From NCBI GenBank assembly GCA_002269645.1, contig NIVC01001317.1:264425-288418 (forward strand): a stretch of 23,994 nucleotides of DNA, in the 5' to 3' direction. The position numbers and the translations under genes are program-made. Source of the DNA: Macrostomum lignano (Eukaryota). This document shows, in pieces, positions 1 through 23,994 of this stretch (position 1 is its first letter; every line of letters starts with the position of its first letter). The notes beneath the pieces were generated by a model. That model was not told where the DNA came from. It made no database searches and saw only the letters and a program-made list of their open reading frames with translations.

Positions 1-5
1 AATCA

Positions 6-6000: not shown

Positions 6001-7008
6001 GATAACAATCAATGATGAGATTTCTGGTCCGTGTTTCTGATTACCCATTCAAGCGGTAATGCTGTTACTTTTTACCAGAACTGAATGCCAATTTATCCAA
6101 GTTTATAATAGTAGAAGTTTAAATTAAAGGTAGGTAAATCAGGAGTTAGATGTTGATAACAATCAATGATGAGATTTCTGGTCCGTGTTTCTGATTACCC
6201 ATTCAAGCGGTAATGCTGTTACTTTTTACCAGAACTGAATGCCAATTTATCCAAGTTTATAATAGTAGAAGTTTAAATTAAAGGTAGGTAAATCAGGAGT
6301 TAGATGTTGATAACAATCAATGATGAGATTTCTGGTCCGTGTTTCTGATTACCCATTCAAGCGGTAATGCTGTTACTTTTTACCAGAACTGAATGCCAAT
6401 TTATCCAAGTTTATAATAGTAGAAGTTTAAATTAAAGGTAGGTAAATCAGGAGTTAGATGTTGATAACAATCAATGATGAGATTTCTGGTCCGTGTTTCT
6501 GATTACCCATTCAAGCGGTAATGCTGTTACTTTTTACCAGAACTGAATGCCAATTTATCCAAGTTTATAATAGTAGAAGTTTAAATTAAAGGTAGGTAAA
6601 TCAGGAGTTAGATGTTGATAACAATCAATGATGAGATTTCTGGTCCGTGTTTCTGATTACCCATTCAAGCGGTAATGCTGTTACTTTTTACCAGAACTGA
6701 ATGCCAATTTATCCAAGTTTATAATAGTAGAAGTTTAAATTAAAGGTAGGTAAATCAGGAGTTAGATGTTGATAACAATCAATGATGAGATTTCTGGTCC
6801 GTGTTTCTGATTACCCATTCAAGCGGTAATGCTGTTACTTTTTACCAGAACTGAATGCCAATTTATCCAAGTTTATAATAGTAGAAGTTTAAATTAAAGG
6901 TAGGTAAATCAGGAGTTAGATGTTGATAACAATCAATGATGAGATTTCTGGTCCGTGTTTCTGATTACCCATTCAAGCGGTAATGCTGTTACTTTTTACC
7001 AGAACTGA
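6..7008 (+). ncRNA. SNORD18: Array of 46 copies of a box C/D snoRNA, U18/SNORD18-like (one per 154-bp unit; first copy 6-78)
   Basis: Per unit: box C ATGATGA (6-12), antisense element TGGTCCGTGTTT (19-30), box D' CTGA (31-34), hairpin TTACC-CATTCAAGC-GGTAA (35-53), box D CTGA (75-78). TGGTCCGTGTTTC is the exact reverse complement of the conserved LSU rRNA segment GAAACACGGACCA, the known U18 target (yeast 25S Am649, human 28S Am1313 in older numbering). Confidence 0.85.
6936..7008 (+). ncRNA. SNORD18: Terminal (probably ancestral) U18-like C/D snoRNA copy in the intron upstream of the RPL21 coding exon
   Basis: Box C 6936-6942, guide 6949-6960, D' 6961-6964, box D 7005-7008. Box D lies 80 nt upstream of the acceptor AG at 7087-7088, a typical position for intron-encoded C/D snoRNAs. 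Confidence 0.88.
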
Positions 7009-7101
7009 AATTACTTAGTCTATGAAAGTTGAGTTTATTGATTAATTAAGGCAGGTGTTTTTATACTGTTAATATCGTTAATTCCAGCTTAAGCTGACAA
7101 C

Positions 7102-7338
7102 ATGACCAACACCAAGGGTATTCGCCGCGGCACGCGGTACATGTTTGCCAGGGATTTCCGACGCCGCGGTGCCCTCCCCCTGTCCACCTACATGCGGGTG
7201 TTTAAACGCGGTGATATTGTCGATATTAAAGGCAACGGCAGCATACAGAAAGGTATGCCGTATAAAACCTATCACGGCAAAACTGGCCGCGTGTACAATG
7301 TCACACCACACGCTGTCGGTGTGATTGTTAATAAGCAG
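7102..7338 (+). CDS. RPL21: 60S ribosomal protein L21 (eL21), coding exon 1 (79 codons)
   Basis: [23 protein letters not shown]...[30 protein letters not shown] is the canonical eL21 N-terminus. Acceptor TTCCAG (AG 7087-7088) precedes a 13-nt UTR and the ATG; phase-0 donor CAG|GTAAGT at 7339. Confidence 0.97.
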
Positions 7339-7420
7339 GTAAGTTCGCGTAAAATTTATACAGAATCCTGAATTTTAAAACTCCTGACCACTTGTAGTCA
7401 CCCTGCAATGACTGTCAGTC

Positions 7421-7775
7421 CTGTCACTTACCTGTCATTTGTGTGACTCACCTGTCATTTGAGTGACACCTGTTATCTTTGTGACTCACCTGTTATTTGA
7501 GTGACTCATCTGTAATTTGAGTGACTCACCTGTTATTTGAGTGACTCATCTGTCATTTGAGTGACTCACCTGTCATTTGAGTGACTCGCCTGTCATTTGA
7601 GTGACACCTGTCATCTGAGTGACTCATCTGTCATCTTAGTGACTCACCTGTAATTTGAGTGACACCTGTCATCTGAGTGACTCATCTGTCATCTGAGTGA
7701 CTCACCTGTCATCTGAGTGACTCACCTGTTATTTAAGTGACTCACCTGTTTTTTGAGTTACACCTGTCATCTGAA
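7421..7775 (+). repeat. Intronic minisatellite, ~20-bp unit GAGTGACTCACCTGTCATTT, ~18 diverged copies
   Basis: Repeated GTGACTCACCTGT core with 18-20 bp periodicity inside the RPL21 intron 7339-7816. Confidence 0.92.
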
Positions 7776-7816
7776 TGACACATAACGATCGCCTCACCAC
7801 CCCACAAATTCACCAG

Positions 7817-8062
7817 GTGCGCAACCGCGTGATCCCCAAACGGATCAACGTCCGCATCGAGCACGTGAATCCCAGCAAGTGCCGACTGGACTTTCTTCGC
7901 CGCGTCAAAGAGAACGACATCAAGCGACGCGAGGCCAAAGCCGCTGGCAAGAAAATCTCCCTGAAGCGTCGGCCGCAGGGTCCGAGGCGCGCCACCATTG
8001 TGAAGACTAAGAAGAACAAGCCCCAGCTGCTGGAGCCGCTGCCCTACGAGCTGATCGCTTAG
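7817..8062 (+). CDS. RPL21: 60S ribosomal protein L21 (eL21), coding exon 2 (81 codons + TAG); spliced product 160 aa
   Basis: Acceptor CACCAG at 7816. VRNRVIPKRINVRIEHVNPSKCRLDFLRRVKEND...PQLLEPLPYELIA* continues in frame from NKQ and matches the eL21 C-terminus. Confidence 0.97.
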   Translation: MRNRVIPKRINVRIEHVNPSKCRLDFLRRVKENDIKRREAKAAGKKISLKRRPQGPRRATIVKTKKNKPQLLEPLPYELIA

Positions 8063-8150
8063 GCATTAAAAGGGGCCTGCGTAATTCTATACAATATTAC
8101 ATCTGGACTCGAGTAATGGGCAAATGAATTTTCAATTCCGAGAATTATGA

Positions 8151-8156
8151 AATAAA
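8151..8156 (+). terminator. Polyadenylation signal of RPL21
   Basis: AATAAA 88 nt after the stop codon, followed by a GT-rich tract (GGTTGTGTTGTTGTTGTTGG, ~8171-8190). Confidence 0.75.
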
Positions 8157-8300
8157 AAACACCGGCCTGTGGTTGTGTTGTTGTTGTTGGACAACTAAAG
8201 CTCTATTGGATGAAAGATTTGCGTTGGTGTTGTGTTGCTTCTTTTTGATGATAATATAATTAGCTTTTTCTAATTTTCGGCTTGTTAGGCTTGCAATGTA

Positions 8301-8665
8301 CAGCCTCCCAGATCCTCAGTTTCTGGGTCAGCCTCCCAGATCCTCAGTTGTTGGGCCACCAGCCTCCCAGATCCTCAGTTTTTGGGCCACAACTCCCCCC
8401 CCCAGATCCTCAGTTGTTGGGCCACCCCCCCCCCCAGATCCTCAGTTGTTGGGCCACCAGCCTCCCAGATCCCCTGTTGCTGGGCCATCCAGCCTCCCAG
8501 ATCCCCACTTGCTGGGCCAGCCTCCCAGATCCTCTGTTGCTGTGCCACCACTGCCTCCCAGCTCCTCAGTTGCTGGGCCAGCCTCCCGGATCCTCAGTTG
8601 CTGGGGGCCGGCCTCCCAGATCCTCAGTTGCTGGGCCAGCCTCCCAGATCCCCAGTTGCTAGGGC
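8301..8665 (+). repeat. Minisatellite, ~28-32-bp unit CAGCCTCCCAGATCCTCAGTTGCTGGGC(CAC), ~12 copies
   Basis: Recurrent CTCCCAGATCCTCAGTTG core. It explains the Pro/Ser-rich overlapping ORFs at 8282, 8296 and the 5' part of 8382. Confidence 0.92.
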
Positions 8666-8735
8666 ATTGTCACCCAGTACTCAGACTCAACTGCGTGTTA
8701 CCATCACCATTCATGCCAATTGGACAACCAACACA

Positions 8736-9472
8736 ATGGCAACCGCTGTGCTACCTCCGCCGCCCTCAATGCCGGATCCGAACTCCTCTGGCGGCAGCTT
8801 CAGTCCTCTAACTCTGTTCGAATGCACCATGACCAATGCCGGTATGCTGGTGGACAGTATGCCAGTTAGGGACCTGGTCTCGGCCCTACGCATCATTGGC
8901 ACTCTGCACACTCACGTTGTCAACATCATGGACCCTGGCGTGGCCAGCGTGTGCGACCTGGCCGATCAGTTCAACTCTCACCGGATTAAATGCCCCGCTG
9001 CCGCTGCCGAGACCGCCGCCGCCTCAGCTGCCGCCGCCGGCGAGGCCGAGCAGTCGCCAACTGCCAACTCCTCACTAGACGAAGGCGGCAACGCTAAGAA
9101 ACGCTTGAAACTGGACGATAATTCTATGGCCTCATCGTTAAACGATCAGAATTCTACGGATAACAATCAGACACTTAATAACACCGCTTCTGCTGCTGTC
9201 AATGTCAAGTCCGAATCTGTTGCCGAATCTGATGATGATTGTTGTATCCTTGACGACGGCGGCTTAGGCCTGATTGGTTCCGACTTTTACACCAGCATGC
9301 AGCAGCAGCAACATCAGCCTCGCAATCCGCAGATATCCTCAGCAGCTTCAGCATCTGCCGCTCCACCCTATGGCGGTCCCGTGCAAGATTCGGCAGCTAT
9401 GAAGCAGATTTTACGCAACACCTACAAAGCTATGCGAGCTGGCGGTCCGCACCTATACGATTTTAATAGGCC
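8736..9472 (+). CDS. Exon 1 of a multi-exon gene encoding a putative nuclear protein (C14orf93-like C-terminal half)
   Basis: ATG at 8736 (ACAATGG context), GC-rich coding bias, Ala/Asn/Gln-rich linkers, NLS-like AKKRLKL. The genomic ORF stops at 9476, but a phase-2 donor CC|GTGAGA at 9473 splices in frame to the exon at 9913 (...LYDFNRP|WNDPLN...). Confidence 0.7.
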
Positions 9473-9535
9473 GTGAGAGATTCATCTGTGTATTCTCTTA
9501 ATTTTCTACTGGGTTTGTTAAATATGACAGATTAT

Positions 9536-9850
9536 ACTACTGAATTGAGAGTAGCTTAATACTGCATGTGCCTCACAATTTATTAGCTTGAGCTTAAAAA
9601 TCAAGAAATTATACTACTTAATTGATAGTAGTTTAATGGCACATGTATGGACTTATTAATGCTTCTCAGTAATCATTACAGCGGTTTAAAAATCTCAGAA
9701 GAGACTACACTACTTAACTGAAAGTAGTTTAATAGCACATGCACGGAGTTATTTATGCTTCTCGGGAATCATTTCTACGAGTTTAAAAGTGCTAAAAGAG
9801 ATAATACTACTTACTAAAATGAAAGTAGTTTATTAGCACATGCGCATAGT
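9536..9850. repeat. Four diverged 77-97-bp units, each starting with an ACTACT-N(7-11)-AGTAG hairpin
   Basis: ACTACT starts at 9536, 9613, 9709 and 9806. Each is followed by AGTAG(T/C)TTAAT/TTATT..(A/G)CATG, and the units share TTTAAAA/CTTAAAA downstream. Confidence 0.7.
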
Positions 9851-9912
9851 TTTTTATTCCTAATAATCGCACAATCGTTTTCTCCCTACCCTCACTGCCT
9901 TGTCTGCGCCAG

Positions 9913-10010
9913 CTGGAACGATCCCTTGAACCAGTCCGTGACTGAACGAATTGTCAGCCAAATTGTTGCCACAACGCCTGACATTTCCGTGTCTCCAGAC
10001 GACTGGCGAA
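9913..10010 (+). CDS. Exon 2 (constant; 98 nt; phase 2 in, phase 1 out) of the C14orf93-like gene
   Basis: Long pyrimidine tract plus GCCAG acceptor (AG 9911-9912); open frame WNDPLNQSVTERIVSQIVATTPDISVSPDDWR; donor A|GTGAGT at 10011. Confidence 0.72.
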
Positions 10011-10906
10011 GTGAGTGCAGCTCCATTTTGAATGTGCATAAAAATTATTGTGTGATTTGTATATAGATATTGAAACATTGGCGCGGTAGCATTTGCAGAG
10101 GTTTACAACCCCCAGTTACTGTTTCATTATTATTAATAATAGTATTATTATTACTATCCTCATCCTCAAAATGAGAGCCTGATGCTCTCTTGACACACTG
10201 ATGAAGCATTAATTGTATGAATTAATTAACTAATTAAAGCATTAATTGGCCTGTTAACAATGCATAGTGCCGAGCATTAACAACAATAATAATTCCACTG
10301 CAAATTCTAATGACATTTAAGGTCAGTCAGTCTCTATGCAGTTCAGTGTTCCCACTACCTGCGGAAATTCCGCAATGCGGAATTTCTGGCTCGCCTGTGG
10401 AAAATCAAGAGGAATTTTGCAATCTGCGGAAATTTGGTTGCTCCGATTTTGCTCTGATATTTGAATATATGAGGAATTGAGGACACACTTTAGTTTTATA
10501 CAATCTATATACTAAATATCTTATATATATATATATTTGTCAATATCTAGTATTTTCTATTTGTTGGAATTCTCCTTAATTATTTGTACACATTATACTA
10601 CTGTTTAAAAGTTCATTTCTTTATTGATTGTAGTTCTTAGTTTAGTCTATGTTCCACCGCCACCCTCTTACTAGGAAACTTAGTTTTTCGCATAGAGCTA
10701 GAATGGAAATTGGAACCTAATGAGTCTGGAAGCGAGTTTAATGAGTCAATACCAATAGTTAATTAAATAGATCAGGTTGGCTAGAAAGACTTTACAAAGT
10801 AGCTCAACTTATTTTTCAGCTTTGCTGCCTTTGCGACTTGCGTTTAACTCAATAAGACAATAACTGAAAAAATATTCTGAGAATACGCTCGTACCCTCGT
10901 AGTGAG

Positions 10907-13282
10907 ATGTCTCTAAGCAAGCCTCGTGCAACAGCATTTCGACATGAGTGGTTACAGCGATCCATTGATGGACGAGTCCTTAGCGAGTGGCTTCAGCCTG
11001 ATCGAAGTGACGAACTGCTTGGCTTCTGCACCGTGTGCAAAAAATCATTTCACCTCGGCACTAGTGGGTTCGGCGCAGTTACAGCCCACGCCCAAGGCAA
11101 GAAGCACAAGAGTCGATTGCCAGTCATGAATGAGACTGGGATAGCACACTTTTTTCCTACTCAAGGCAGCAAGCCATCTTTCACTGCCATGAAGAAGGCT
11201 GACGCAGAAGTGCTAATGGCAGAGCTGCGACTTGGAATCCATTTTATTGAGCACAATATTGCGTACAATACAGCCGACCACTCGGGTGTGTACCCAGCTA
11301 TGTTTCATGATAGCAAAATTGCTCAAGACATGAAGTGCCATCGCACAAAACTGTGCTATCTTGTTAATCACGCTCTTGCACCAGTGATGCGTGATGAGAT
11401 GATTCAAGACTTGAACTCTGGCTGCGGACTGTTTTCCCTTTCTATTGACGAGTCATCTGATGGGGCACGAAAGCACATGGCAGTTGTAATATCATTTGTG
11501 TCGTCGAAGAAGGGAAGGCTGTGTACAACTGCCTTGAAAACAGTTGAAGTTTCTGACTGCTCAGCCGCTGCTCTGAAAGAGGAAGTTTTGAAGATTCTCG
11601 ATGAATTCAACATTCCGATTAGGAACTGTGTTAGCATATCAACAGATGGACCAGCAGTTATGGTTGGAAAGTTTAACGGCTTCCAAAAAATAATGCATGA
11701 CTTTGCATCTCATCTTGTTTCCATTGGACCATGCAGTTTGCATATTGTCTCCAATGCGGTTCGACGTGCATGTGAAGCCTTTGATGGAAATGTAGAGGAC
11801 TTCGCTGATGAAGTGTTCTCCTACTTTCAGACCTCGAAAAGGTGGACGCGTTATAACAAAGTTCAGTCACTGCTTCAAGTGGCCCAGCATCGCATGTTGC
11901 GGCGCGTTGAAACAAGATGGGTGCAGCTTTTGCCTGTTGTTAATAGGCTTATTGAGCAATATGATTCTCTGGAAGAATTCTTTGTGAAGAATCCATCTCT
12001 GATTGAGCAAAAGACCAAAAAGACCAAAGAAATTGCTGAGCACCTAAAGTCGACGCATACACTGCTTAATCTGCAATTTCTGGCTGCTGTCTTGCCGCAT
12101 CTAGACCAATTCGAGAAGGCATTTCAGACAGAGGAGCCGTGTGTCCATCTTTTGCATGGAGAAGTCCGCAATTTGTTTAGGCAGACTTTGTCATTCTTTT
12201 TAAATCCAGCGCACATTCAGGAGAACAATCGACATTTGAGAAATTTGTCGTTGGAAGGCAAATACTTCCTCTCTAATGAAGCCATCTTTATCGGCGAAGC
12301 AGCTAAAGAGACATTAAAAAAAGGCTTGTCGGACACTCAACAGAAGCTCTTTTTCCTACGTGTTCGCACCTTCTATCGTGAACTTGCATTGTACTTGCAA
12401 GAACATTTGCCTCTGTCGAATCCTGTCTTACGCTCGCTACAATTTCTGGATCCGCAATATCCTATGAAAGTCGGTCTCGCAGCAGCTACTACATCGCTTG
12501 CTGCATGTAACCTAGCCAAACAAATGGAATATACACCTGATTCCGTATCAAAAATTGATTCCGAATGGCGATGCTTCCTCGTTGACCAACAGGTAGTGGC
12601 TTTGGCTAAGGACAATGATGTGGTTACATTTTGGCTTCGCGTGTCAGCCCTAGAGCTTGGTGGTCAAAAAAAGTACGGCACACTAACCCGACTAGCTTTG
12701 GGTGCTCTGACCATTCAGCCAGGCAACGCTGCAGTAGAGCGAGTCTTTAGCGAGTTATCGGACTTGTTAACGAAAAAACGCAACAAGCTTGGTGAATTGT
12801 CTATTGATGCCTGCCTTTTTGTTCGACACTACATCCGCCAATCTGGGCTAGTTGGTGAGGAGCCTACAACCTGCGAAAACTTTCCATTGACAGACGTCTA
12901 CGTTCAGTCTGCTGGGAAGGCTCGTTCAGTGTACATGGAATTCCTTCAACAGCAAAGAGATGCTGATAAGGCCAAGAAAGATGCACGGATTGCCGCTAAA
13001 CAGTTGGAAGAGCAGCTTGCTGCTGAGATTGAAGTAAACAAGAAGAAGATGGAATTGGAGGCGGCTGAAAAAAAGTTGGCTGCAGAGCGTGAAATAATTG
13101 AAGCTGAGAAGCGAGCTGCTTCGGCTATGCTGCTCGAGTATCAGAAAAAAATGAGGACTTTAGAAGAGCGAGAGGCCAAAGCTCTACATGATGACGCCAA
13201 GCTGCTGAAGCGAAAGTTGAAGACTCAAGACGAGCTGGCTGCAGAAGCACTGAAAAAGGCCGCCAAGATGATATGCAAATGA
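10907..13282 (+). CDS. hAT transposase, 791 aa, uninterrupted
   Basis: N-terminal zinc finger FCTVCKK...TAHAQGKKH; catalytic D in SLSIDESSD; second D in ISTDGPAVMVG; CxxH motif CSLH; RVETRW; catalytic E in the dimerization-domain motif GNAAVERVFS. Confidence 0.93.
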   Translation: MSLSKPRATAFRHEWLQRSIDGRVLSEWLQPDRSDELLGFCTVCKKSFHLGTSGFGAVTAHAQGKKHKSRLPVMNETGIAHFFPTQGSKPSFTAMKKADAEVLMAELRLGIHFIEHNIAYNTADHSGVYPAMFHDSKIAQDMKCHRTKLCYLVNHALAPVMRDEMIQDLNSGCGLFSLSIDESSDGARKHMAVVISFVSSKKGRLCTTALKTVEVSDCSAAALKEEVLKILDEFNIPIRNCVSISTDGPAVMVGKFNGFQKIMHDFASHLVSIGPCSLHIVSNAVRRACEAFDGNVEDFADEVFSYFQTSKRWTRYNKVQSLLQVAQHRMLRRVETRWVQLLPVVNRLIEQYDSLEEFFVKNPSLIEQKTKKTKEIAEHLKSTHTLLNLQFLAAVLPHLDQFEKAFQTEEPCVHLLHGEVRNLFRQTLSFFLNPAHIQENNRHLRNLSLEGKYFLSNEAIFIGEAAKETLKKGLSDTQQKLFFLRVRTFYRELALYLQEHLPLSNPVLRSLQFLDPQYPMKVGLAAATTSLAACNLAKQMEYTPDSVSKIDSEWRCFLVDQQVVALAKDNDVVTFWLRVSALELGGQKKYGTLTRLALGALTIQPGNAAVERVFSELSDLLTKKRNKLGELSIDACLFVRHYIRQSGLVGEEPTTCENFPLTDVYVQSAGKARSVYMEFLQQQRDADKAKKDARIAAKQLEEQLAAEIEVNKKKMELEAAEKKLAAEREIIEAEKRAASAMLLEYQKKMRTLEEREAKALHDDAKLLKRKLKTQDELAAEALKKAAKMICK

Positions 13283-13342
13283 CTAGAAAACAGAACAATG
13301 GGGCGTACTAGTAACTAATAAGACAATGTCACGCGTCTTGAC

Positions 13343-13551
13343 TAGAGGTAGGATTGGATCCCGATCACAAAAGCCTGGGATCCTGGCCAAACTCATGATC
13401 ATGATTCTGAAATTATTTTGAGATCCCATCCAACCATCTTATATATTCATATCTTTAAATGCTGAAACCTGAAATTCAATCATGAATTGCAATCCCGATT
13501 CCCGAAATTAGGAATCCCAATCCCAAAAATCTTCATCCTGTCCAATCTCTA
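13343..13551. mobile_element. Non-autonomous hAT-type MITE (209 bp) nested in the 3' non-coding part of the hAT element
   Basis: Termini TAGAGGTAGGATTGGAT and (reverse complement) TAGAGATTGGACAGGAT match at 13/17 positions. Flanked by near-identical 8-mers GTCTTGAC (13335-13342) and GTCTTGGC (13552-13559). Internal ATCCC/GGGAT subterminal repeats. Confidence 0.65.
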
Positions 13552-14046
13552 GTCTTGGCAGCAGTCTAATTAATAAGCAAAGTATTGTATCTCTAGTAGT
13601 TAACTTTACTTAATTAGTTTTACTTTTATTAACAGTTGAATAGAACCTAAAGAATGTTTAATGCTTGTAGTTGTAACTAAATAGCAGTTGTGCCTGTGTG
13701 TCACGTGACACGTCAAATCTTTTCCGTAAAGTGCAAACATTGAGCCAGCCATTGTTTTTTCGTTAAAGTAGAATAAAAAGAACTTTTTGCCATCCACAGC
13801 CAATGTGATGGGTTGACAACTTGATTGTAAACTGGAAGTCTAGAATACATTGACTTAGACTTGCTTACTTATTTTGAGTTTAAAAAAATGCTTGTTCAAA
13901 AGTTTTTTTCCATAGTTTTGTTGAAAATCTTATCATATTTAATAGGTTAAGCTATCTGCGGAATTTTCTTTAGGCTGCGGAGGAAAAATGGGTAGATTGG
14001 AGTGGGAACACTGATGCAGTTCTAAAGCCTATTTGCATTTTTGCAG

Positions 14047-14138
14047 CCTAAATGCTCAGACTATGGGAAGAATTGCATCCAACGCGCGATGTACAGTTGA
14101 AAAAGCTTAGAGACAGGAAATATTGTCGAGTGAAAAGA
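14047..14138 (+). pseudogene. Variable exon 3a (92 nt) with an in-frame TAA at 14049-14051: pseudo-exon or poison exon
   Basis: Acceptor TTTTTGCAG (AG 14045-14046), donor GTAAGT at 14139. Reads T*MLRLWEELHPTRDVQLKKLRDRKYCRVKR in the same phase and with the same terminal motif as its siblings. Confidence 0.55.
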
Positions 14139-14295
14139 GTAAGTTAAGCAGTATGAGGAAATATATATTAATTTAGCCTTAAAAACTACTGCCGTGTGCA
14201 AATGATACTACTGCCCGCGTGAATCTAAAACTCAGCCAAAAACAACATTAATTTATGCTACCTATTAACTCTACACTGAAACACTTGGACTGTAG

Positions 14296-14396
14296 AACTG
14301 TGCAGTCAGTTAATCGGGCAGCTAATGAGCAATCCGTCTGGCAGAAATCTTGATTTGAAACGTCAGACCATGAGAAAATGCGGCAGATTGCGCACC
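14296..14396 (+). CDS. Variable exon 3b (101 nt)
   Basis: Acceptor CTGTAG, donor GTAAGA at 14397; reads (K)LCSQLIGQLMSNPSGRNLDLKRQTMRKCGRLRT; phase 1 in, phase 0 out. Confidence 0.55.
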
Positions 14397-14464
14397 GTAA
14401 GAGACTTTTGCTACTTACAGGGGTGTGGAACTCCGGCCCCCCCCCCGGCCCTGTGACACTTAAC

Positions 14465-14545
14465 TCTCTTTCTCTCTTCTCTCCCCTCTTCTCTCGCCTC
14501 TCCACTCTCCTCTCCTATCCCCTTTTCTCCTCTCTCTCTTATCTC
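14465..14545. repeat. CT-rich low-complexity tract
   Basis: Irregular CTCTCTT/CTCC runs. Confidence 0.75.
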
Positions 14546-14730
14546 TTGTGTCTGTAGTAAAAACGTTTGCCGACCCCTGTGCCACTAGAAGATTCTGTAG
14601 CCGTTTGTTATTCCTGCTTTCGCAATCCTCTGCGAACTGCATTATCGTTGCGCTAATAAAAAGAATCCGAAGCAATGCTTAGTAGTATGTGTTGGGCATG
14701 GTGATGTCTCTCTATCTGATAAATTTGCAG

Positions 14731-14831
14731 GCAAATGTGCCGTAGCAATATTCACCCCGCTGCATAGGGAGACGGTTGTCAAGCACGAGGATAGGAAGCG
14801 GGTTAAACGAAAATATTCCCGAGTTTCCGCT
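14731..14831 (+). CDS. Variable exon 3c (101 nt)
   Basis: Acceptor TTTGCAG, donor GTAAGT at 14832; reads (S)KCAVAIFTPLHRETVVKHEDRKRVKRKYSRVSA; phase 1 in, phase 0 out. Confidence 0.68.
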
Positions 14832-14967
14832 GTAAGTTGACCTTGATTTCTAAGAAATAAGCCAAACCCTCGCCCTCACCGTTTCCTCTGCGAAAGTCGC
14901 CGACATTTGTATACAAAATAAATAAAGCACAACTAATTTTGTTTTAAACTGTCAATCCTATCTGTAG

Positions 14968-15077
14968 TTCGATGCAATTTGACATTTTTTGACAATTCCG
15001 CGTCAATGAAAAGCGACGCCGTGTTGAAATACGAGGCCAGAAAACGGTCAATGCGTAAATATGCCAGAGTTAGCTCT
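14968..15077 (+). CDS. Variable exon 3d (110 nt)
   Basis: Acceptor CTATCTGTAG, donor GTAAGT at 15078; reads (I)RCNLTFFDNSASMKSDAVLKYEARKRSMRKYARVSS; clearly paralogous to 3c. Confidence 0.68.
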
Positions 15078-15239
15078 GTAAGTAGTATATGCTTGGGTGA
15101 AATTGTCCACTAACACTTGAACAAGATCTCTGCAAATTTAAACCACAAGTGCCCGTTAACCACCAAAGTTTCACTGTGTACTTTTTATTGGGTTGGAATG
15201 CTTATTTTACTTTAAACACTTGCAATTAATGATGTCTAG

Positions 15240-15334
15240 GCGGTATAGACGAATTTGTGCGCACCGTTTTGGACGAAGAGATGCGCAATATTAAATCGCG
15301 CGGTTATAAACGGCGCTATAGCCGTATTACTGCG
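15240..15334 (+). CDS. Variable exon 3e (95 nt)
   Basis: Acceptor GTCTAG, donor GTAAGT at 15335; reads (S)GIDEFVRTVLDEEMRNIKSRGYKRRYSRITA; phase 1 in, phase 0 out. Confidence 0.65.
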
Positions 15335-15354
15335 GTAAGTCTCATTAACCCGGG

Positions 15355-15477
15355 GTGTGTGTGTGTGTGTGTGCCTGTCTGTGTATGTGTCTGTCTGTCT
15401 GTCTGTCTCTGTCTGTCTGTGTATGTGTCTGTCTGTCTGTCTGTCTTCCTGTGTGTGTGTGTGTGTCTGTCTTAGTG

Positions 15478-15513
<36 letters not shown>

Positions 15514-15740
15514 TGTCTGCCTGTCTGTGTATGTGTCTCTGTCTGTCTGCTTGTCTGTCTGTCTGTGTATGTGTGTGTGTGTGTGTGCCTGTCTGCCTCT
15601 GTCTGTCTGTCTGTCTGTCTTCCTGTGTGTGTGTGTGTGTGTGTGTCTGTCTGTCTGTCTGTCTTCCTGTGTGTGTGTGTGTCTGTCTGTCTGTCTGTCT
15701 GTCTTCCTGTGTGTGTGTGTGTGTGTCTGTCTGTCTGTCT
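15355..15740. repeat. Compound microsatellite (GT)n/(GTCT)n
   Basis: Alternating TG dinucleotide and GTCT tetranucleotide runs; source of the CVCV/THTH ORFs. Confidence 0.97.
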
Positions 15741-15960
15741 ATTGGCGTTAACCTATGTATTAAAAAATCCAAGCCCTACCTAGGCTATCTGTATTTAAAG
15801 TATATAGAAAACTGGGCAAATTAGAAATCCATTTAAGCCGCTGAGAAGTCCTTTTCTCAACCTCTGCTAGTCGCTTTCCGTTGTGTATTTAACTTATTAT
15901 TTGCTCGTTTTGAGTGTTTTTACTTACTATACTCCAATATAACTATGCGGTTCTGACTAG

Positions 15961-16070
15961 GACTACTGTACCATATAATGTTTGACGATGGCCGCTACAC
16001 TGGTAGCGAGGGCGGTTCTTGCACCAAAAATCGACTCAAATATTGGCGTCGTTATAGGCGAATCTCTACA
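15961..16070 (+). CDS. Variable exon 3f (110 nt)
   Basis: Acceptor TTCTGACTAG, donor GTAAGT at 16071; reads (R)LLYHIMFDDGRYTGSEGGSCTKNRLKYWRRYRRIST; phase 1 in, phase 0 out. Confidence 0.62.
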
Positions 16071-16189
16071 GTAAGTTCCCTCTGCACTTGTCATATCGGC
16101 CTAAGCAACAGTTATTATGTTGCTTGCCCTTAGCAACAAAGATTTTATATGCTGAGCAATAGTACTCAAATACCTTGTATTGCATACAG

Positions 16190-16266
16190 CTTTAATTAAG
16201 GAGATATTGTTTACAAAGCAGCGAGCTGATCTGGCCGCCGCGCGGAAACGCATGCGCGTACGCTGC
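16190..16266 (+). CDS. Variable exon 3g (77 nt)
   Basis: Acceptor TTGCATACAG (AG 16188-16189), donor GTAAGT at 16267; reads (T)LIKEILFTKQRADLAAARKRMRVRC. An alternative AAG acceptor at 16200 would instead make it a phase 0-0 exon. Confidence 0.55.
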
Positions 16267-16773
16267 GTAAGTTCAATTGGTCAGAATTTATTGATCTCGG
16301 CTTTTTTACATTATATATCTACTCAACCCGCTACTGATAGTAATATAATTGGGTCTGAGCACTTGTTTCTTTTTGTCTACAGATTGGAGCTTCATTAGAA
16401 ACCTGCAAAAAAATCTGAACAATCTGCTTGGACTTTTCTAATTGATGTACGTCTAGGTCCTGGGTTCGAATCCGCGTCGCGACTTGCACCTTAGGCCCTG
16501 ACCACTAATGCATAGTAACTAAAATTTGTGGATATGCTGGGGTGAACCGCAATAAATGGAGACTTCTTTCCCAATAGGAGGTTTTTGACAAACTTGACTC
16601 CCACTTCTAATTGAATGAATCCCCATTGCTATATAAATTAGCAGGGGTGCGATTCACCCATGAGGGCCAACCCCCCACCCCAAAACAGTGTACATGCCTG
16701 ATTGAAGTGTATGTTCTCAGGATTCATTGCGCACCACCCCCCCCCCCATTGTTCGCATCGCCATCCCATGCAG

Positions 16774-17115
16774 AAGCTGTCCCGTCGTCAGAAGGCATTT
16801 GAACAAGTCCTGCCATCGCTGAACCCGGACGATCTAGACAAGTATCGAGTTGTACTATCGCGCGATTTCACTTCGTCAGACGAGGAGACTGAGGACGAAT
16901 CCACTGGCGAGACGGCCCTGCGAGTTCGAGAACTCGTTTGGGAGTCGGAAGAGGTCCGCCAGGTGAAGCAGCGGCTAGATCAGACGTTTATGAATCGATT
17001 TGCCACGCAGAAGCAGCGAGCCACTCTGCAGCGCTGCATTCGAAACGCCGGCTGCACGAGTTCGAGGACGCCACCCGCTGAAGCGCCGGACTGGGCTCTG
17101 CGAGCTCCCGAGTGA
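16774..17115 (+). CDS. Terminal constant exon (113 aa + TGA), C14orf93-like C-terminal domain
   Basis: C-rich tract plus CATGCAG acceptor (AG 16772-16773), phase 0. KLSRRQKAF...YRVVLSRDFTSSDEE...LRVRELVWES...LDQ...R...SSRTPPAEAPDWA follows the pattern I recall for C14orf93-like proteins (basic helix, SxEE acidic patch, V/W segment, LD, SxRxPP); family call from memory, not searched. AATAAA at 17388-17393. Confidence 0.68.
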   Translation, partial: KLSRRQKAFEQVLPSLNPDDLDKYRVVLSRDFTSSDEETEDESTGETALRVRELVWESEEVRQVKQRLDQTFMNRFATQKQRATLQRCIRNAGCTSSRTPPAEAPDWALRAPE

Positions 17116-17900
17116 AAATTGCATTGACTCTTTTATTCCAGGGCGACTTAGCTAGAAGGCAGAGAGCAATATGCTTTGTTTCTTAAAAAAGCTTTGAAGG
17201 CTATTTTCTACGCAGAAATCGCTCGATGCAAGCCGGCCTTCAAATATTTTCTAAGAAAACCCAAAGTTTCCCATCCTCGGACTTCTGTGCTACTGATAGT
17301 AGTTTTTTTAAGTCAGCTTTTGTCTAAAACGATTTCTTGTATTTAAAATTGTGGCATCAAATTTGCAATTTGTGTTACACGAAACTTAATAAATTTGACT
17401 GGCAGTTTAAATACCTGGGTGTTGCATTTTGTTGTGTAAGCTGTCGGTGAACCAGTTACAATTATCTGTAGGATTTCTGCAATCGTTTTTTATGTATTAA
17501 CATGTTTTAATTTATAGTAATTCTCGTCTCGCATATATTCTATTCTCTTGTTTGCACCGATTTTGTTTATAAATAATCAAACAGGTTAACTTTTTTACAT
17601 TTTCTTAACAAGTTGCTACGGCTACAGATTAATGTTAGTGTAATATAAACATACAGCGCAAAGTAACTTGTCCTTGTCAACATAATCCATACGCTTGTGC
17701 ATCCTGTTTAATACCTGCCATTATCCAGCTGTACTTCGTTGAACAAAGCTTGAATACGAATACAAGTTTAGTGTTATTCTTAAACAGCAGACCAGAAATT
17801 TACTCATGAAGGCACCGTGCTTATTGTCATGCTCGCTATTCAATTGTGTCCATTGATGTGTCTTCAGGTCTTTAGCTTTTTGTTATTGATGAAAATCGAC

Positions 17901-17938
17901 AGATAGGTAGGTAGATAGATAGATAGATAGATAGATAG

Positions 17939-18006
<68 letters not shown>

Positions 18007-18039
18007 GATAAATATAGATAGATAGATAGATAGATAAAT

Positions 18040-18081
<42 letters not shown>

Positions 18082-18114
18082 GATAAATATAGATAGATAG
18101 ATAGATAGATAAAT

Positions 18115-18152
<38 letters not shown>

Positions 18153-18185
18153 GATAAATATAGATAGATAGATAGATAGATAAAT

Positions 18186-18238
<53 letters not shown>

Positions 18239-18321
18239 AAGATAGAAAGATATATAGATATTAGATGGATAGATAGATAGATAGATACATTCATAGGTAG
18301 ATAGATGCGTACGTAGATAGA
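17901..18321. repeat. (GATA)n microsatellite with interruptions
   Basis: Long AGAT/GATA run with recurring GATGATAAATATA interruptions. Confidence 0.97.
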
Positions 18322-18769
18322 CTATTTAGAATCTCTATAGTAATAACAGTATCGCAATATTGCAAGGAGTTGGGCGGATGTGCACTGAAATCTCTTAGCA
18401 GCCACTTTGAATATTTGTCCCAGATTCAATAGCCGATTTTTGCAGACAGTACGGGCTCTCAATAGTGAAGAGCCGAGCCCAGTTCGAGTCGCACGTGCTC
18501 TGAAAGTAGAAAATTCTCGAAATTGGGTCAGCGCGTCTGAATTAGTGTGGGGGAGTCAAGATTTGAGACTTCAAAAGTCAGTCGCAGACATGCAGGTACC
18601 CGTATTTTTTAACATTTTTGAAAGAGAGAAGTGAAATATCCACGCTGAGGGAACGCAAGCACGGATATGAATTCGAGTCGCTATTTTCAAGCATTCAGAA
18701 TTTAACGTTTTAACTTTATCTATTCAGCAGCAGTTCTTTTGGTTGGAATTGGATAATCAGATCTTTCCG

Positions 18770-19107
18770 AAGCTTCACAAATCGTCTAGAAGTCTTGCTT
18801 GTTGCCTTCACATTCACAAGCTCAAAGCTTCACAAATCGTCTAGAAGTCTTGCTTGTTGCCTTCACATTCACAAGCTCAAAGCTTCACAAATCGTCTAGA
18901 AGTCTTGCTTGTTGCCTTCACATTCACAAATCGTCTAAAAGTCTTGCTTGTTGCCTTCACATTCACAAGCTCGAAGCTTCACAAATCGTCTAAAAGTCTT
19001 GCTTGTTGCCTTCACATTCACAAGCTCAAAGCTTCACAAATCGTCTAAAAGTCTTGCTTGTTGCCTTCACGTTCACAAGCTCGAAGCTTAATAAATCGTA
19101 CAGAAGT
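18770..19107. repeat. 55-bp tandem repeat, ~6 copies (one internally deleted)
   Basis: AAGCTTCACAAATCGTCTA(G/A)AAGTCTTGCTTGTTGCCTTCACATTCACAAGCTC(A/G) at 18770, 18825, 18880 and onward; a degenerate remnant lies near 19146. Confidence 0.93.
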
Positions 19108-21740
19108 CTTTTGATTAGATAAGCTCCATAATTCTGGAGAATTTATGCTTGTTGCTTTCACAAGCTCTGCTTTCAATCCACACTACCAGGTCTTTCTATA
19201 ATCACTTCACTAGCTGACGACTTAAACCAGTTCGACCAATGTCAATTTTCGAACTATAGGAAAAGCTGTCCTTGCTATTCTCTGGAATTCCCCTATTGCT
19301 TTTAACAGTCGTGACTTTTACGTGTATATCTGCAGTAGGTGCGGGTTGTCTCCATGTCTAGCCTCGGGGTTGGAATACTATTATTATATTATATCAGCCA
19401 AGACGTAATTCTTTGCTGTAGTTTCTCGTGTATTTCAACCGACACAAGAAGCCCATTAAGCTGTTATAGTGGCTATAAAATTCTCCCACTGAGTGCCTCT
19501 ACGGACACAGCCATATTACACGTGGAAGTCAAAAGTTAAATTACACCCGATAAATTAAATACGAGTAGATTTTATTTAATTTTCGCGTATTACCCAACTT
19601 CCGTTTTTAGGGAACTCCCGTCAGTCGCTATAGGAGTCCTTTGCGAACGTGCAACAGGCGTATAACACTGTAGCTACTGTTAATAGGGCCGATAAGTCTT
19701 TGTTCTTGTCACGCGCTTGAATTCGGATTCCCCGCTGGTCAGTGGTTCGCTCCGGAGGGTTGGGTTAAAAGTGTCGTGATGCAATCAGCATTAATTAGAG
19801 CTGTGTCCTCCACGCGTGTGTCTGCTTAGGTCCGGAGTTATCGTTATGATAATGGATGGCTGGTTGCAGGTATGAAGTTTTAACTGCAGGATTTCCGCTT
19901 CTTCTTTTAATTCTTGAGTCATCGCGCGCTGAGTTGTCTCGAAGAACTTGGGAGCTAGTGGCCGCGGCCCGCACGCGAGCACATCCGAGTGTTCGGGAAC
20001 AGAGCTAACAGATGGGATAATTTCATAGCTGGATTGGACTGCAGATTCTGATAGGCAGATACAAGCGGAAGATTGAGGAAGCTGAGTCTGGCTTGCCTGC
20101 ATCATCATCAACCCCGTGCTGTTTCCGCTGACCAGTTCGCTACATTGAACAGTGTCGCCCGTCTGCGCGCCCCAGAGCACCACTTCTAACACTTAATTAT
20201 ATATCGAACCGCTATATTCTGGCTGCAGTTATGCAATTGGGAGAATGCTCAAAATATGAGGCTGGTGTAAAGACTATATAATCTCGTATAGAAAGAAGAC
20301 CCAAAAGAAATTTGTTGCTTTTTTGAACGCCCGGCTGAGCAGAGAAACCGCGAGTTCCCCGCTGTTTGAGCGCAGGTGAAACGTAACAACAGACATCCTT
20401 TTAGTATCGGCAATAATTCTCTTGAGTCGACACCTAAATCTACAAGCTTCTCCAAGGTCCCGAAGATAAGAGATTTCTGCTTTATAGCAGGCAACACAGA
20501 ATTGCAGTCTGAGATAGATAAAAATGCATATATTTTAAGACAAACTGATAAGAGACTTACAAAACCTAATTTTGAGCAAACAGATGCTTTGTGTAGACGC
20601 GCAAAGAAATAAGATCCAAGATAGATCATAAAATCTGTTATCAAAACGCATGTTAAGTCTCTGACTACAATCCAGATTCGTCTAGAATATGATTTTGTTC
20701 AGTGTCCGACCATCAGTTTTATCCTGTCTGCATGGAACCATGGCGGTTTCCGTGAAATTTGAAGCAACCGCCATTCCATGACGGCACGCGCCTCTCGTTT
20801 CCTGAGATTTGACCCTTCCCGCCCCTTGCCAGACTTCAGAAGCGGCTACCGCTGTTTGTTAAGGATTCCATGCCGTGTCTCCGTCCGGTCGCCTCTTGGA
20901 TTTATAGTGACTCTGCCGTCACTGTGTCCCTACAAAGTTAGCAAACAGTAAGCAGAGATAGGAGGCGCGAGAAGGGAGTTGAGAACCGGTGTTTGCTCAA
21001 CCACACGCTCCCTGGATGGACTCATGCCTCATAAGACTGAGCTAGTCTCTAAGCGGAGTCAGCCTCGCTCGTTCGGTCTCTATGCAACGTCGGCACTTAA
21101 ACACACAACCGCAGTGAGAAACTTCATCATCAGAGCTGTTTTCCTACTGATTTTCAATATATCCAACAGCCATCTGCATGCGCCAGCGTCCTCTGAAGGC
21201 ATGCGCCTAAACAGAACAACATACATCCGTCATCATTCGTTCGCCCTTGTTTTCATTTCTCAATATTCGAAGTTTTTCGAGGTCAGATAGATGGGGGGGG
21301 GGAGTAGAGGTGACCCCTGCAGTGATCCAGCTGGACAAACTTTGCGGCCGGGGGTCGGGCGATGCAAAAGTGTCCGGAAATGAGACGCTTTGAGCTTAGG
21401 GAAATATTTTCTTCAGGTGCCCGGTCTGCGGTTACCAAGATATTATTTGTTTATTAGGAATGAAATTCCACGATTTCTCTGCGCATGTCTACATTTAAAA
21501 AGCGGCGTGATGCCTGAAACTTCAATAGCAATTGACACTTGACATTGTGGACAAAGGAGCCAGATGGTCAAGGCTGGTAAGGGTGAGAAGGGGGAGAGAG
21601 GAGGAATGAGACAGGGGAAGAATCGCAGAGGTGAGTGAAGACTGTGATGTGACTGCAGAAGAGATGGGAGAGGTGAGAGTGAGGGAGAGAAAGTGAGATA
21701 GAGGGAAAGTGAATATGAGAGGAATAGAGTTGAGATCGGA

Positions 21741-23070
21741 GGGAGAGAGTGGAGATGGGAGAGAGGAGATTGGACGGAGAGTGATGGGAGAGTGGGGATG
21801 GGAGAGTGGAGATGGGAGAGTGGGGATAAGAGGGAGAGGAAATGGGAGGGAGAGTGGAGATGGAAGGGAGAGTGGGGATGGGAGGGAGAGTGGAGATGGG
21901 AGAGTGGGGATGGAGAGTGGGGATGGGAGAGTGGGGATGGGTGAGTGGGGATGGAAGGGAGAGTGGAGACGGGAGAGTGGGGATGGGAGGGAGAGTGGAG
22001 ACGGGAGAGTGGGGATGGGAGAGTGGGATGGGAGAGTGGGATGGGAGAGTGGAGATGGGAGAGTGGGGATGGGAGAGTGGAGATGGAGAGTGGGGATGGG
22101 AGAGTGGGGATGGGAGAGTGGAGATGGGAGAGTGGGGATGGGAGAGTGGGGATGGGAGAGTGGAGATGGGAGAGTGGGGATGGGAGAGTGGGGATGGGAG
22201 AGTGGGGATGGGAGAGTGGGGATGGGAGAGTGGGGATGGGAGAGTGGAGATGGGAGAGTGGGGATGGGAGAGTGGAGATGGGAGAGTGGAGATGGGAGAG
22301 TGGGGATGGGAGAGTGGGGATGGAGAGTGGGGATGGGAGAGTGGGGATGGGAGAGTAGGGATGGGAGAGGGAGAGTGGAGATGGAGAGTGGGGATGGGAG
22401 AGTGGGGATGGGAGAGTGGGGATGGGAGAGTGGAGATGGGAGAGTGGAGATGGGAGAGTGGGGATGGAGAGTGGGGATGGGAGAGTGGGGATGGGAGAGT
22501 GGAGATGGGAGAGTGGGGATGGGAGAGTGGGGATGGATGAGTGGGGATGGAAGGGAGAGTGGAGACGGGAGAGTGGGGATGGGAGGGAGAGTGGAGACGG
22601 GAGAGTGGGGATGGGAGGGAGAGAGGAGATGGGAGGGAGAGTGGGATGGGGAGAGTGGGGATGGGAGAGTGGAGATGGGAGAGTGGGGATGGGAGAGTGG
22701 GGATGGGAGAGTGGGGATGGGAGAGTGGAGATGGGAGAGTGGAGATGGGAGAGTGGGGATGGAGGGAGAGAGGAGATGGGAGGAGAGTGGGGATGGGAGG
22801 GAGAGAGGAGATGGGAGGGAGATGGGAGGGAGAGAGGAGATGGGAGGGAGAGTGGAGATGGGAGGGAGAGAGGAGATGGGAGGGAGAGTGGAGATGGGAG
22901 GGAGAGTGGGGATGGGAGGGAGAGTGGAGATGGGAGGGAGAGTGGGGATGGGAGGAGAGTGGGGATGGGAGGGAGAGAGGAGATAGGAGTGAGAGAGTTG
23001 AGACGGGAGAGAGGAGATGGGAGGAAGAGAGTTGAGATTGGAAGGAGAGAAGAGATGAGAGGAGATGGGA
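21741..23070. repeat. Purine-rich minisatellite, ~14-bp unit GGGAGAGTGG(G/A)GAT, preceded by GA-rich sequence from ~21575
   Basis: Dozens of GGGAGAGTGGGGAT/GGGAGAGTGGAGAT units; source of the ESGDGRVGMGEW and PSPLS ORFs. Confidence 0.96.
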
Positions 23071-23678
23071 GGCAGATCAATGCAGGATTCTGTTACGAGC
23101 TATACAACCTCAAACACCGGGAAAACATTCATGCCGGAAATTCTCCATCGCCCAACCTGCCGGGGGGGGGGGGGTTGGGGATGTAGGTATTTGGCTGCGC
23201 GCGTGTCTCGCTCGCCTATCTGCGAGTGGAGACTTGAGTCCGGTCGAACTTTCATTAGAATTTAATAAGCTTGAGTGTGTTTGGTCACGCCGCCGCCTTT
23301 GGTTGCGGTCTCGCTGGCCTAGGTGCGCGTGACTCCTGTTTTGGCAGGTGCGTGCCTGGGGACTCGCTGTGACTGGCTCTATAATATATGGCTTGAAATG
23401 AAATTCAAAATTGGACTGATTGAATCGGTGTTGCTGTCTCGGCGTAGCTGGGGTTGAGAGTGGTCGCATGCTTTTATTGCTTGAATTTCGGTTGAAGTGG
23501 GCTAATCTATGCATATACATAAATATATATGGCATACTTGATTGCGGTTGATACACAACTTTTCGGCAAAAGCTTTCTGGATTCTGTACAAAAAAATAAT
23601 GGATGTTGTGGAGGTGTTAGGGGCCACTTGCTGTTTCTGAGGCGTCCTTGATGCCTCTGGTGTCCTTTCACTTGCGTC

Positions 23679-23994
23679 CATCAGTTGTTTTTGGCGCCAA
23701 TCGGTTGTTTTAGATAATCGGTCAATCGGTCGTTTTTGGCGCCAATCGGTTGTTTTGGCGCCAATCGGTTGTTTTAGACAATCGGTCGTTTTTGGCGCCA
23801 ATCGGTTGTTTTTGGCACCAATCGGTTGTTTTTGGCGCCAATCAGTTGTTTTTACACCAATCGGTTGTTTTAAACAATCGGTTGTTTTTGGCGCCAATCA
23901 GTTGTTTCTGGCACCAATCGTTGTTTTTGGCACAAATAGGTTGCTTTTGGCGCCAATAGGTTGCTTTTGGCACCAATCGGTTGTTTTTGGCGCC
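23679..23994. repeat. 20-bp tandem repeat (TTTTTGGCGCCAATCGGTTG)n, truncated by the right window edge
   Basis: About 15 diverged units carrying TTGG(C/A)(G/A)CCAATC(G/A)GTTG. Confidence 0.92.

Follow-up and report, generated by a model that had tools for sequence, protein, structure and literature searches.

To our knowledge, almost all large mutually exclusive exon clusters in which docking sites and selectors govern exon choice come from arthropod genes. In exon 6 of Drosophila Dscam1, the docking site (dock) lies downstream of constitutive exon 5 and each variant is preceded by a selector (Graveley 2005, as summarised in PMC6071210). This upstream dock is the rarer arrangement, the docks of the other known clusters being located downstream of the cluster, and clusters are modelled to arise by tandem duplication of an exon together with part of its intron (PMC6071210). 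A stretch of 23,994 nucleotides from the flatworm Macrostomum lignano (assembly GCA_002269645.1, contig NIVC01001317.1, positions 264,425 to 288,418 of the forward strand), referred to below as the window, was analysed here for a cassette of seven short exons within the gene Mlig015124g1. These tandemly duplicated exons are, in our judgement, probably mutually exclusive, with one of them chosen through dock/selector pairing of the Dscam exon 6 type.

The Macrostomum cassette resembles Dscam1 exon 6 in its tandem homologous internal exons of equal phase, in the single candidate dock, placed in the intron that follows the constitutive exon upstream of the array, and in candidate selectors (here upstream of variants 2-7) that pair with overlapping dock nucleotides. 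It differs in having 7 variants rather than 48, and in belonging to a flatworm and to an uncharacterised, probably nuclear helical protein rather than to an arthropod immunoglobulin (Ig)-domain receptor. Unlike in Dscam1, the first Macrostomum variant is without a convincing selector, and the pairing is predicted here from sequence. Competing intronic pairings that select one duplicated exon, in arrays that likewise stem from the copying of an exon along with part of its intron, are also found at Dscam exons 4 and 9, 14-3-3 zeta, Mhc, MRP1, srp and human ATE1, although in these the docks are downstream or the pairing is bidirectional, and mostly 2-3 exons are involved.

An earlier reading, made from the letters of the window without database searches (the sequence-only reading), had compared the cassette both with Dscam-type clusters and with lola, mod(mdg4), broad and fruitless. 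The latter genes carry groups of alternative 3' terminal exons, each with its own stop and polyadenylation site, and the variants of mod(mdg4) and lola are partly joined by trans-splicing. They share with Mlig015124g1 a constant N-terminal part followed by one of several short alternative segments, but the comparison fails because the Macrostomum variants are internal: every variant (variant 1 excepted in the window) is open to its last codon, has a consensus donor and needs the shared terminal exon at 16774-17115. The reading as Dscam-type mutually exclusive exons is backed by the gene models, the homologous exon of the paralogues, purifying selection on variants 2-7, and the candidate dock and selectors, all described below.

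Mutually exclusive exons in flatworms and other helminths are described in the accessible text of PMC7434440 for coq-2 (exons 6a/6e) and mrp-1, and by that account duplicated exons are spliced in a mutually exclusive manner in Platyhelminthes. Unlike the Macrostomum cassette, coq-2 is there a two-exon switch, both are conserved genes whose function is known, and that text describes no dock/selector set for flatworms. The sequence-only reading had known of no description of such a cassette for this protein family, and a literature search likewise turned up none, neither of a flatworm docking site and selector set nor of the Macrostomum cassette; the gene identifiers of the locus were not found in the searchable literature. 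The locus fits a known class, the mutually exclusive exon array with competing RNA structures, and what is new is the phylum, the gene family, its unannotated state and the replication in paralogues with different pairing codes.

The exon cassette and its reading frame

Positions 7001-23994 of the window are 100% identical to the M. lignano locus L005 (NIVC01001317.1), in which the gene model Mlig015124g1 (NCBI protein P0152) covers window positions 8718-17115. The exons, dock and selectors given below for this gene are all on the + strand. Three constitutive coding exons frame the cassette: exon 1 (8736-9472, 737 nt, ATG at 8736), which was placed by its translation match to P0152 and P0001; exon 2 (9913-10010, 98 nt), which ends in phase 1 with the donor GTGAGT; and the terminal coding exon (16774-17115, 342 nt), which starts in phase 0 and ends with the stop TGA at 17113-17115. 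The composite protein translated from the proposed exons is 99% identical to M. lignano BOX15_Mlig033261g1, and agrees with the NCBI proteins P0152 (L005) and P0001 (a second genomic copy).

Between exon 2 and the terminal exon, the seven variants span 2.2 kb. Variant 1 lies at 14047-14138 (92 nt) and has TAA as its first full codon here; it is followed by variant 2 at 14296-14396 (101 nt, donor GTAAGA), variant 3 at 14731-14831 (101 nt), variant 4 at 14968-15077 (110 nt), variant 5 at 15240-15334 (95 nt, present in the RNA-seq-derived NCBI models), variant 6 at 15961-16070 (110 nt) and variant 7 at 16190-16266 (77 nt). These coordinates and lengths, each of them 2 mod 3, had been proposed in the sequence-only reading and were all verified. 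The same holds for the AG acceptor and GTAAGT donor (GTAAGA in variant 2), present at 7/7 variants, and for the entry in phase 1, the exit in phase 0 and the basic end motifs of all seven (variant 1 with its in-frame TAA here).

The frame arithmetic of that reading was also confirmed. Exon 2 ends in phase 1, the exon at 16774 starts in phase 0, and 737+98+101+342 = 1278 nt give an open frame of 425 codons. Any single variant joined to 16774-17115 yields an open frame of 417-428 codons, variant 1 excepted in the window. Zero or two variants break the frame, as had been claimed: when all are skipped, the terminal exon runs into a stop after 9 codons, and every variant that follows another variant, and is therefore read in frame 0, meets a stop within 2-6 codons. 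The six or more isoforms predicted to differ in one short segment (25-36 residues) come to six in this copy, because variant 1 has an in-frame TAA, and to seven in the genomic copy L004.

The seven variant segments start hydrophobic and end in the common motif [KR][KR]x x R[VIL]xx. Their pairwise identity is 10-42%, and they can be aligned to the single exon of paralogous genes. GTAAGT occurs seven times on the + strand of the 24-kb window, six times as a cassette donor and once as the intron donor of the neighbouring RPL21 gene. A relaxed scan of the introns of Mlig015124g1 for further AG...GT exons of the right phase and with a basic end found none, except for chance matches inside a transposase open reading frame (ORF). 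A chance origin of the exon pattern is excluded.

Candidate docking sites, selectors and paralogous arrays

Sliding 25-nt windows of the flanking introns were paired with the inter-variant introns using RNAduplex. The segment 10079-10103 (TGGCGCGGTAGCATTTGCAGAGGTT) pairs with 6/6 regions upstream of variants 2-7 at -24.5 to -28.7 kcal/mol, compared with -17.3 at the lowest, and -10.8 at the median, for shuffled windows. Among the 3,724 25-nt windows of 7000-23994 (cassette excluded; background median -11.6, standard deviation 3.8), it ranks first both by median and by weakest partner. The only other strong scores, which it outranks, came from a G-rich array at 21745-23023 and were non-specific. 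RNAduplex on whole introns and a count of k-mer complementarity were uninformative for the dock, and it was the sliding scan that located it. The candidate docking site was set at 10077-10103 (core GGCGCGGTAGCATTTGCAGAGG at 10080-10101), 67-93 nt downstream of the exon 2 donor.

Each of variants 2-7 has a candidate selector about 20-90 nt before its acceptor, with pairing energies of -27 to -31 kcal/mol. These selectors are located at 14190-14226 for variant 2 (GTGTGCAAATGATACTACTGCCCGCG, -28.5 kcal/mol with the dock), 14626-14658 for variant 3 (CCTCTGCGAACTGCATTATCGTTGCGC, which includes CCTCTGC, -30.7 kcal/mol), 14880-14905 for variant 4 (core CCTCTGCGAAAGTCGCCGAC, -27.2 kcal/mol), 15123-15174 for variant 5 (core ATCTCTGCAAATTT at 15125-15138, -30.4 kcal/mol), 15858-15882 for variant 6 (core CCTCTGCTAGTCGCTTTCCG, -28.2 kcal/mol) and 16070-16102 for variant 7 (CCCTCTGCACTTGTCATATCGGCC, overlapping the variant 6 donor, -29.5 kcal/mol). 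Variant 1 has a weak candidate partner only (-20.5). Each selector has a common core complementary to the GCAGAGG of the dock and then pairs with differing further parts of it; because all of them use the same GCAGAGG core, only one dock pairing would be possible at a time. The complement CCTCTGC occurs four times in the window, each time upstream of a variant exon, and GCAGAGG occurs twice, once in the dock. The dock lies within a 120-nt stretch that is invariant in three genomic copies of the locus, and 2 sites vary across the roughly 350 nt of dock and selector segments, compared with 3.1% in the flanking introns.

By analogy with Dscam exon 6, the dock would pair with one selector per pre-mRNA, the pairing would loop out the upstream variants and bring the exon 2 donor beside the chosen acceptor, and the GTAAGT donor of the chosen variant would then be joined to 16774. 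The frame rule could serve as a backstop, with a stop within 2-6 codons after double inclusion and a frame shift after skipping, and nonsense-mediated decay would presumably clear transcripts that include two variants or the dead variant 1.

The evolutionary comparison covers the M. lignano genomic copies and paralogues. Paralogues P0003, P0004 and P0005 (33-39% identical) have one homologous segment each, flanked by the conserved W of exon 2 on one side and the conserved KLSRRQK on the other. Two further paralogues carry arrays of their own, which are unannotated, the public annotation holding one variant per gene. At L006 (P0006, Mlig018137g1; gene at 8206-13225 of that locus), five 77-nt variants were found at 9004-9080, 10255-10331, 10543-10619 (the annotated one), 12142-12218 and 12410-12486. 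The candidate dock of this gene (CCTGGAAACGTCGCAAGTTCTCACC, about 8277-8305) lies 72-100 nt after the exon 2 donor, pairs with 4/5 variants at -25.6 to -31.7 kcal/mol and takes ranks 1-4 of 4,091 windows. The first variant of L006 is without a strong selector (-18.0), like the first variant of Mlig015124g1. GACGTTT occurs three times in 20 kb at L006, always upstream of a variant, and AAACGTC once, in the dock. At L007 (P0007, Mlig000065g7; gene at 7196-10097), two variants (7675-7760 and 9340-9416) are accompanied by a candidate dock at 7428-7460 (GCTCCTGCTCGAGTTTGAAGTCTGCTAA) with two matching selectors, a third dock/selector code.

No convincing cassette was found in the four paralogues with a single annotated exon (L002, L003, L008, L009). 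L002 (P0003) has its annotated exon and a doubtful candidate at 13971-14047, while L003, L008 and L009 (P0004, P0011 and P0009) have one exon each at the cassette position. L002, the only single-exon paralogue scanned for a dock, gave none (best -15). In the cross-gene control, the L006 dock reached -27.5 on its own selectors and -15.3 on those of Mlig015124g1, and the L007 dock -24.8 on its own and -17.7 and -19.9 on the others; the window dock discriminates less well than these two. The L006 and L007 arrays, together with the weaker cross-gene pairings, are stronger evolutionary support for dock/selector pairing than the invariance among three copies.

The best-surviving alternative keeps the exons as real and mutually exclusive but has them chosen without dock/selector pairing, by frame shift, nonsense-mediated decay and protein splicing factors, the complementarity being a leftover of duplication. 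We consider it unlikely, although the stop met within 2-6 codons by every variant that follows another would suit it, selector likeness could have been inherited with the duplicated unit, and the window dock pairs moderately with introns of the other genes. Such a leftover agrees poorly with a dock that lies outside the duplicated units and is yet the best-pairing of 3,724 windows, with two paralogues that have different docks at the same relative position and matching selectors, with the single-exon paralogue L002 that has no dock, and with the low variability of the dock and selector segments relative to the flanking introns.

The maximum identity among variants of one gene is 42%, 36% and 43% in the three genes and exceeds their likeness to variants of the other genes, which suggests that the three cassettes were amplified separately. 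We propose only tentatively, and with more doubt than conviction, that this Macrostomum family has repeatedly amplified the same helix-coding exon (7, 5 and 2 variants in three paralogues) and that each array has its own docking/selector 'code'. If this were true, the repeated arrays would form a natural covariation series for the docking-site model; and if, in addition, exon choice were stochastic or differed by cell type, isoforms would be diversified in a Dscam-like way outside arthropods, in a nuclear, possibly nucleic-acid-binding protein and not in a surface receptor. Seven exons in 2.2 kb, in a flatworm capable of transgenesis and with two paralogous arrays of different pairing sequences, would make a compact example. 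It would offer a small, tractable system for studying whether RNA pairing alone chooses an exon, how downstream variants are skipped, and how such clusters originate by duplication of an exon and one intronic stem arm.

Genomic copies and evidence for exon use

The analysis of dN/dS and cassette conservation proposed with the sequence-only reading was run on a three-way alignment of the window with the genomic copies L001 and L004, which have the complete cassette without the transposon described below. The cassette is kept, as are all acceptors and donors across the three copies. Variants 2-7 have 7 variable sites in 594 nt, 5 synonymous and 2 non-synonymous (pN/pS 0.12, Fisher p = 0.008), and the constant terminal exon has 8 in 342 nt, 6 synonymous and 2 non-synonymous (pN/pS 0.11). 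In the flanking introns, microsatellites excluded, 27/883 sites are variable (3.1%). Variants 2-7 are under purifying selection, with a pN/pS that matches the constant exon.

Variant 1 has 4 variable sites in 92 nt, 0 synonymous and 4 non-synonymous. Independent stops were found in 2/3 copies, a TAA in the window and, at a different codon, a TAG in L001 (variant position 11662-11753), and the exon is intact in L004 (QMLRLWEEMHPRRDVQLKKLRDRKYCRVKR, 11649-11740). The ancestral cluster therefore had seven working members, of which the first is being lost in two copies. Since its splice sites are the best of the cluster, the disabled variant 1 could act as a 'poison exon'.

In the available gene models, P0152 from this locus and P0001 from the second copy splice 10010 to 15240 and 15334 to 16774, thus using variant 5. 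The NCBI annotation of the assembly was built from RNA-seq with StringTie/TACO at --isoform-frac 0.75 and alternative forms were filtered further (PMC5730564), so that minor isoforms were dropped by design. The UniProt models P0002 and P0153, from an older assembly, join exon 2 to variant 2 (10010 to 14296) and then read through its donor into the intron, and the model of the third locus, P0151, retains intron 2. Of the predicted junctions, those of variant 5 are present in the NCBI models and the upstream junction of variant 2 in UniProt, and the protein collections gave no sequence containing variants 3, 4, 6 or 7, whose use in RNA we infer. The public annotation, which has one isoform per locus, is corrected by the cassette.

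That only variant 5 is functional, the other six being decaying pseudo-exons spliced never or by accident, would account for its sole appearance in the RNA-seq-derived annotation and for the independent stops of variant 1 in 2/3 copies. We regard this as quite improbable: variants 2-7 are open and have GTAAG donors and AG acceptors in 3/3 copies, their pN/pS of 0.12 is like that of the constant exon while variant 1 shows only non-synonymous changes, each of variants 2-7 has kept a selector of its own, and the annotation pipeline removed minor isoforms by design while the UniProt models use variant 2. Very improbable indeed is that the segments are chained together, or are separate small genes or fragments of transposable elements, as might be suspected from the hAT transposon that closely precedes the cassette in this haplotype, for chaining leads to immediate stops, the segments begin at acceptors and not at promoters and have no usable ATG start, they are homologous to a single exon at the same position in paralogues, and two copies without the transposon still carry the whole cassette.

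Several points weigh against mutually exclusive exons chosen by dock pairing in Mlig015124g1. The three copies diverge by only about 3%; the selection test rests on 7 substitutions, and because of this low divergence the conservation of dock and selectors among the copies is weak evidence. The dock is G/U-rich and reaches -22.6 and -25.5 kcal/mol on selector regions of the other genes, compared with -28.5 on its own, and the selectors could resemble one another in part because they were copied with the duplicated exons. Downstream of the cluster, at 16267-16773, no further docking site stood out (best about -17 to -18), so the model explains how upstream variants would be looped out but not how downstream ones are skipped. 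Variants 3, 4, 6 and 7 occur in no transcript or protein of the searchable collections, including an alignment search with all seven isoforms and the 90% cluster, and the variant 2 models, which read through the donor, may be ab initio predictions rather than transcripts. Finally, no Pfam family was found for the isoforms, the paralogues or 47 relatives, and nothing significant was obtained in a sequence-profile search of the PDB or with Foldseek against PDB and BFVD.

The encoded protein and features around the gene

Mlig015124g1 is a member of an uncharacterised metazoan family that is expanded in Macrostomum. A profile search gave 377 relatives at E up to 0.001, including Lingula, Patiria, Gigantopelta and Saccostrea proteins named "uncharacterized", and the homologue search with the family alignment returned "uncharacterized" names only. 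AlphaFold2, run on a 47-sequence alignment, predicted a confident C-terminal half (pLDDT mostly >90 from about residue 225) with a single 52-residue helix at residues 280-331 of P0152 (pLDDT 84-98), in which the variant segment occupies about residues 285-316. The variant segment is thus confidently predicted to form the first two thirds of a long alpha-helix, its basic end continuing into the constant KLSRRQK. In exon 1, KKRLKLDD looks like a nuclear localisation signal. The variable segment would most likely alter a surface through which a constant, probably nuclear, scaffold binds partners or nucleic acids; this is the weakest of our suggestions. One specific helix of a widespread and uncharacterised metazoan family is in this way marked as the target of diversifying exon duplication.

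The variant 2 model P0153 (UniProt A0A1I8HGZ8) bears the automatic name 'BEN domain-containing protein'. If the name were right, a DNA-binding domain would take its C-terminal helix from the variable exon. The name is a lead that the searches did not support: Pfam gave no BEN match for any isoform or paralogue (E up to 10), the 25 families that were listed for the 47 relatives do not include it, the PDB sequence-profile search had no hit, and the Foldseek matches contained no BEN structure.

The intron upstream of the cassette holds a hAT transposon at 10345-14013 with an ORF at 10907-13282 (+), which encodes an intact 791-aa transposase with the Pfam hAT dimerisation domain. The element has perfect terminal inverted repeats (CAGTGTTCCCACT) and is flanked by an 8-bp target-site duplication (ATGCAGTT) at 10337-10344 and 14014-14021. 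It is missing from L001 and L004, where the empty site is exact; the insertion is therefore recent and the element may be active. In this haplotype it inserts 3.7 kb between the dock and all selectors. Within the cassette, a (TGTC/TG)n repeat lies at 15356-15740 in the intron before variant 6. The last intron contains a tRNA-like fragment with a T-arm-like sequence (GGTCCTGGGTTCGAATCCGCG) at 16455-16490, which may be a remnant of a short interspersed nuclear element (SINE); ARAGORN and Rfam made no tRNA or family call in the region, this fragment included.

Upstream of Mlig015124g1, the RPL21 gene (ribosomal protein L21e) lies at 7102-8062, with coding pieces at 7102-7338 and about 7790-8062 and an intron occupied by a 20-bp minisatellite (7426-7779). 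Between the two genes, directly upstream of the start codon, about 12 copies of a 28-31-bp repeat (CAGCCTCCCAGATCCTCAGTTGCTGGGCCAC) occupy 8301-8665; this could be a promoter or 5' untranslated region (UTR) repeat, and its copy number varies among the genomic copies. Positions 1-7009 consist of a 154-bp tandem unit, reported as 45.5 copies of 100% identity, which extends to the start of the window and represents either a genuine satellite of young age or an artefact of the assembly. In the other two copies, a methyltransferase gene lies upstream of RPL21 in place of this satellite. Downstream of the gene, an (AGAT)n microsatellite is found at 17901-18306, the G-rich array at 21745-23023 consists of about 94 copies of a 14-bp unit, and a 20-bp minisatellite unit fills the end of the window at 23680-23994.

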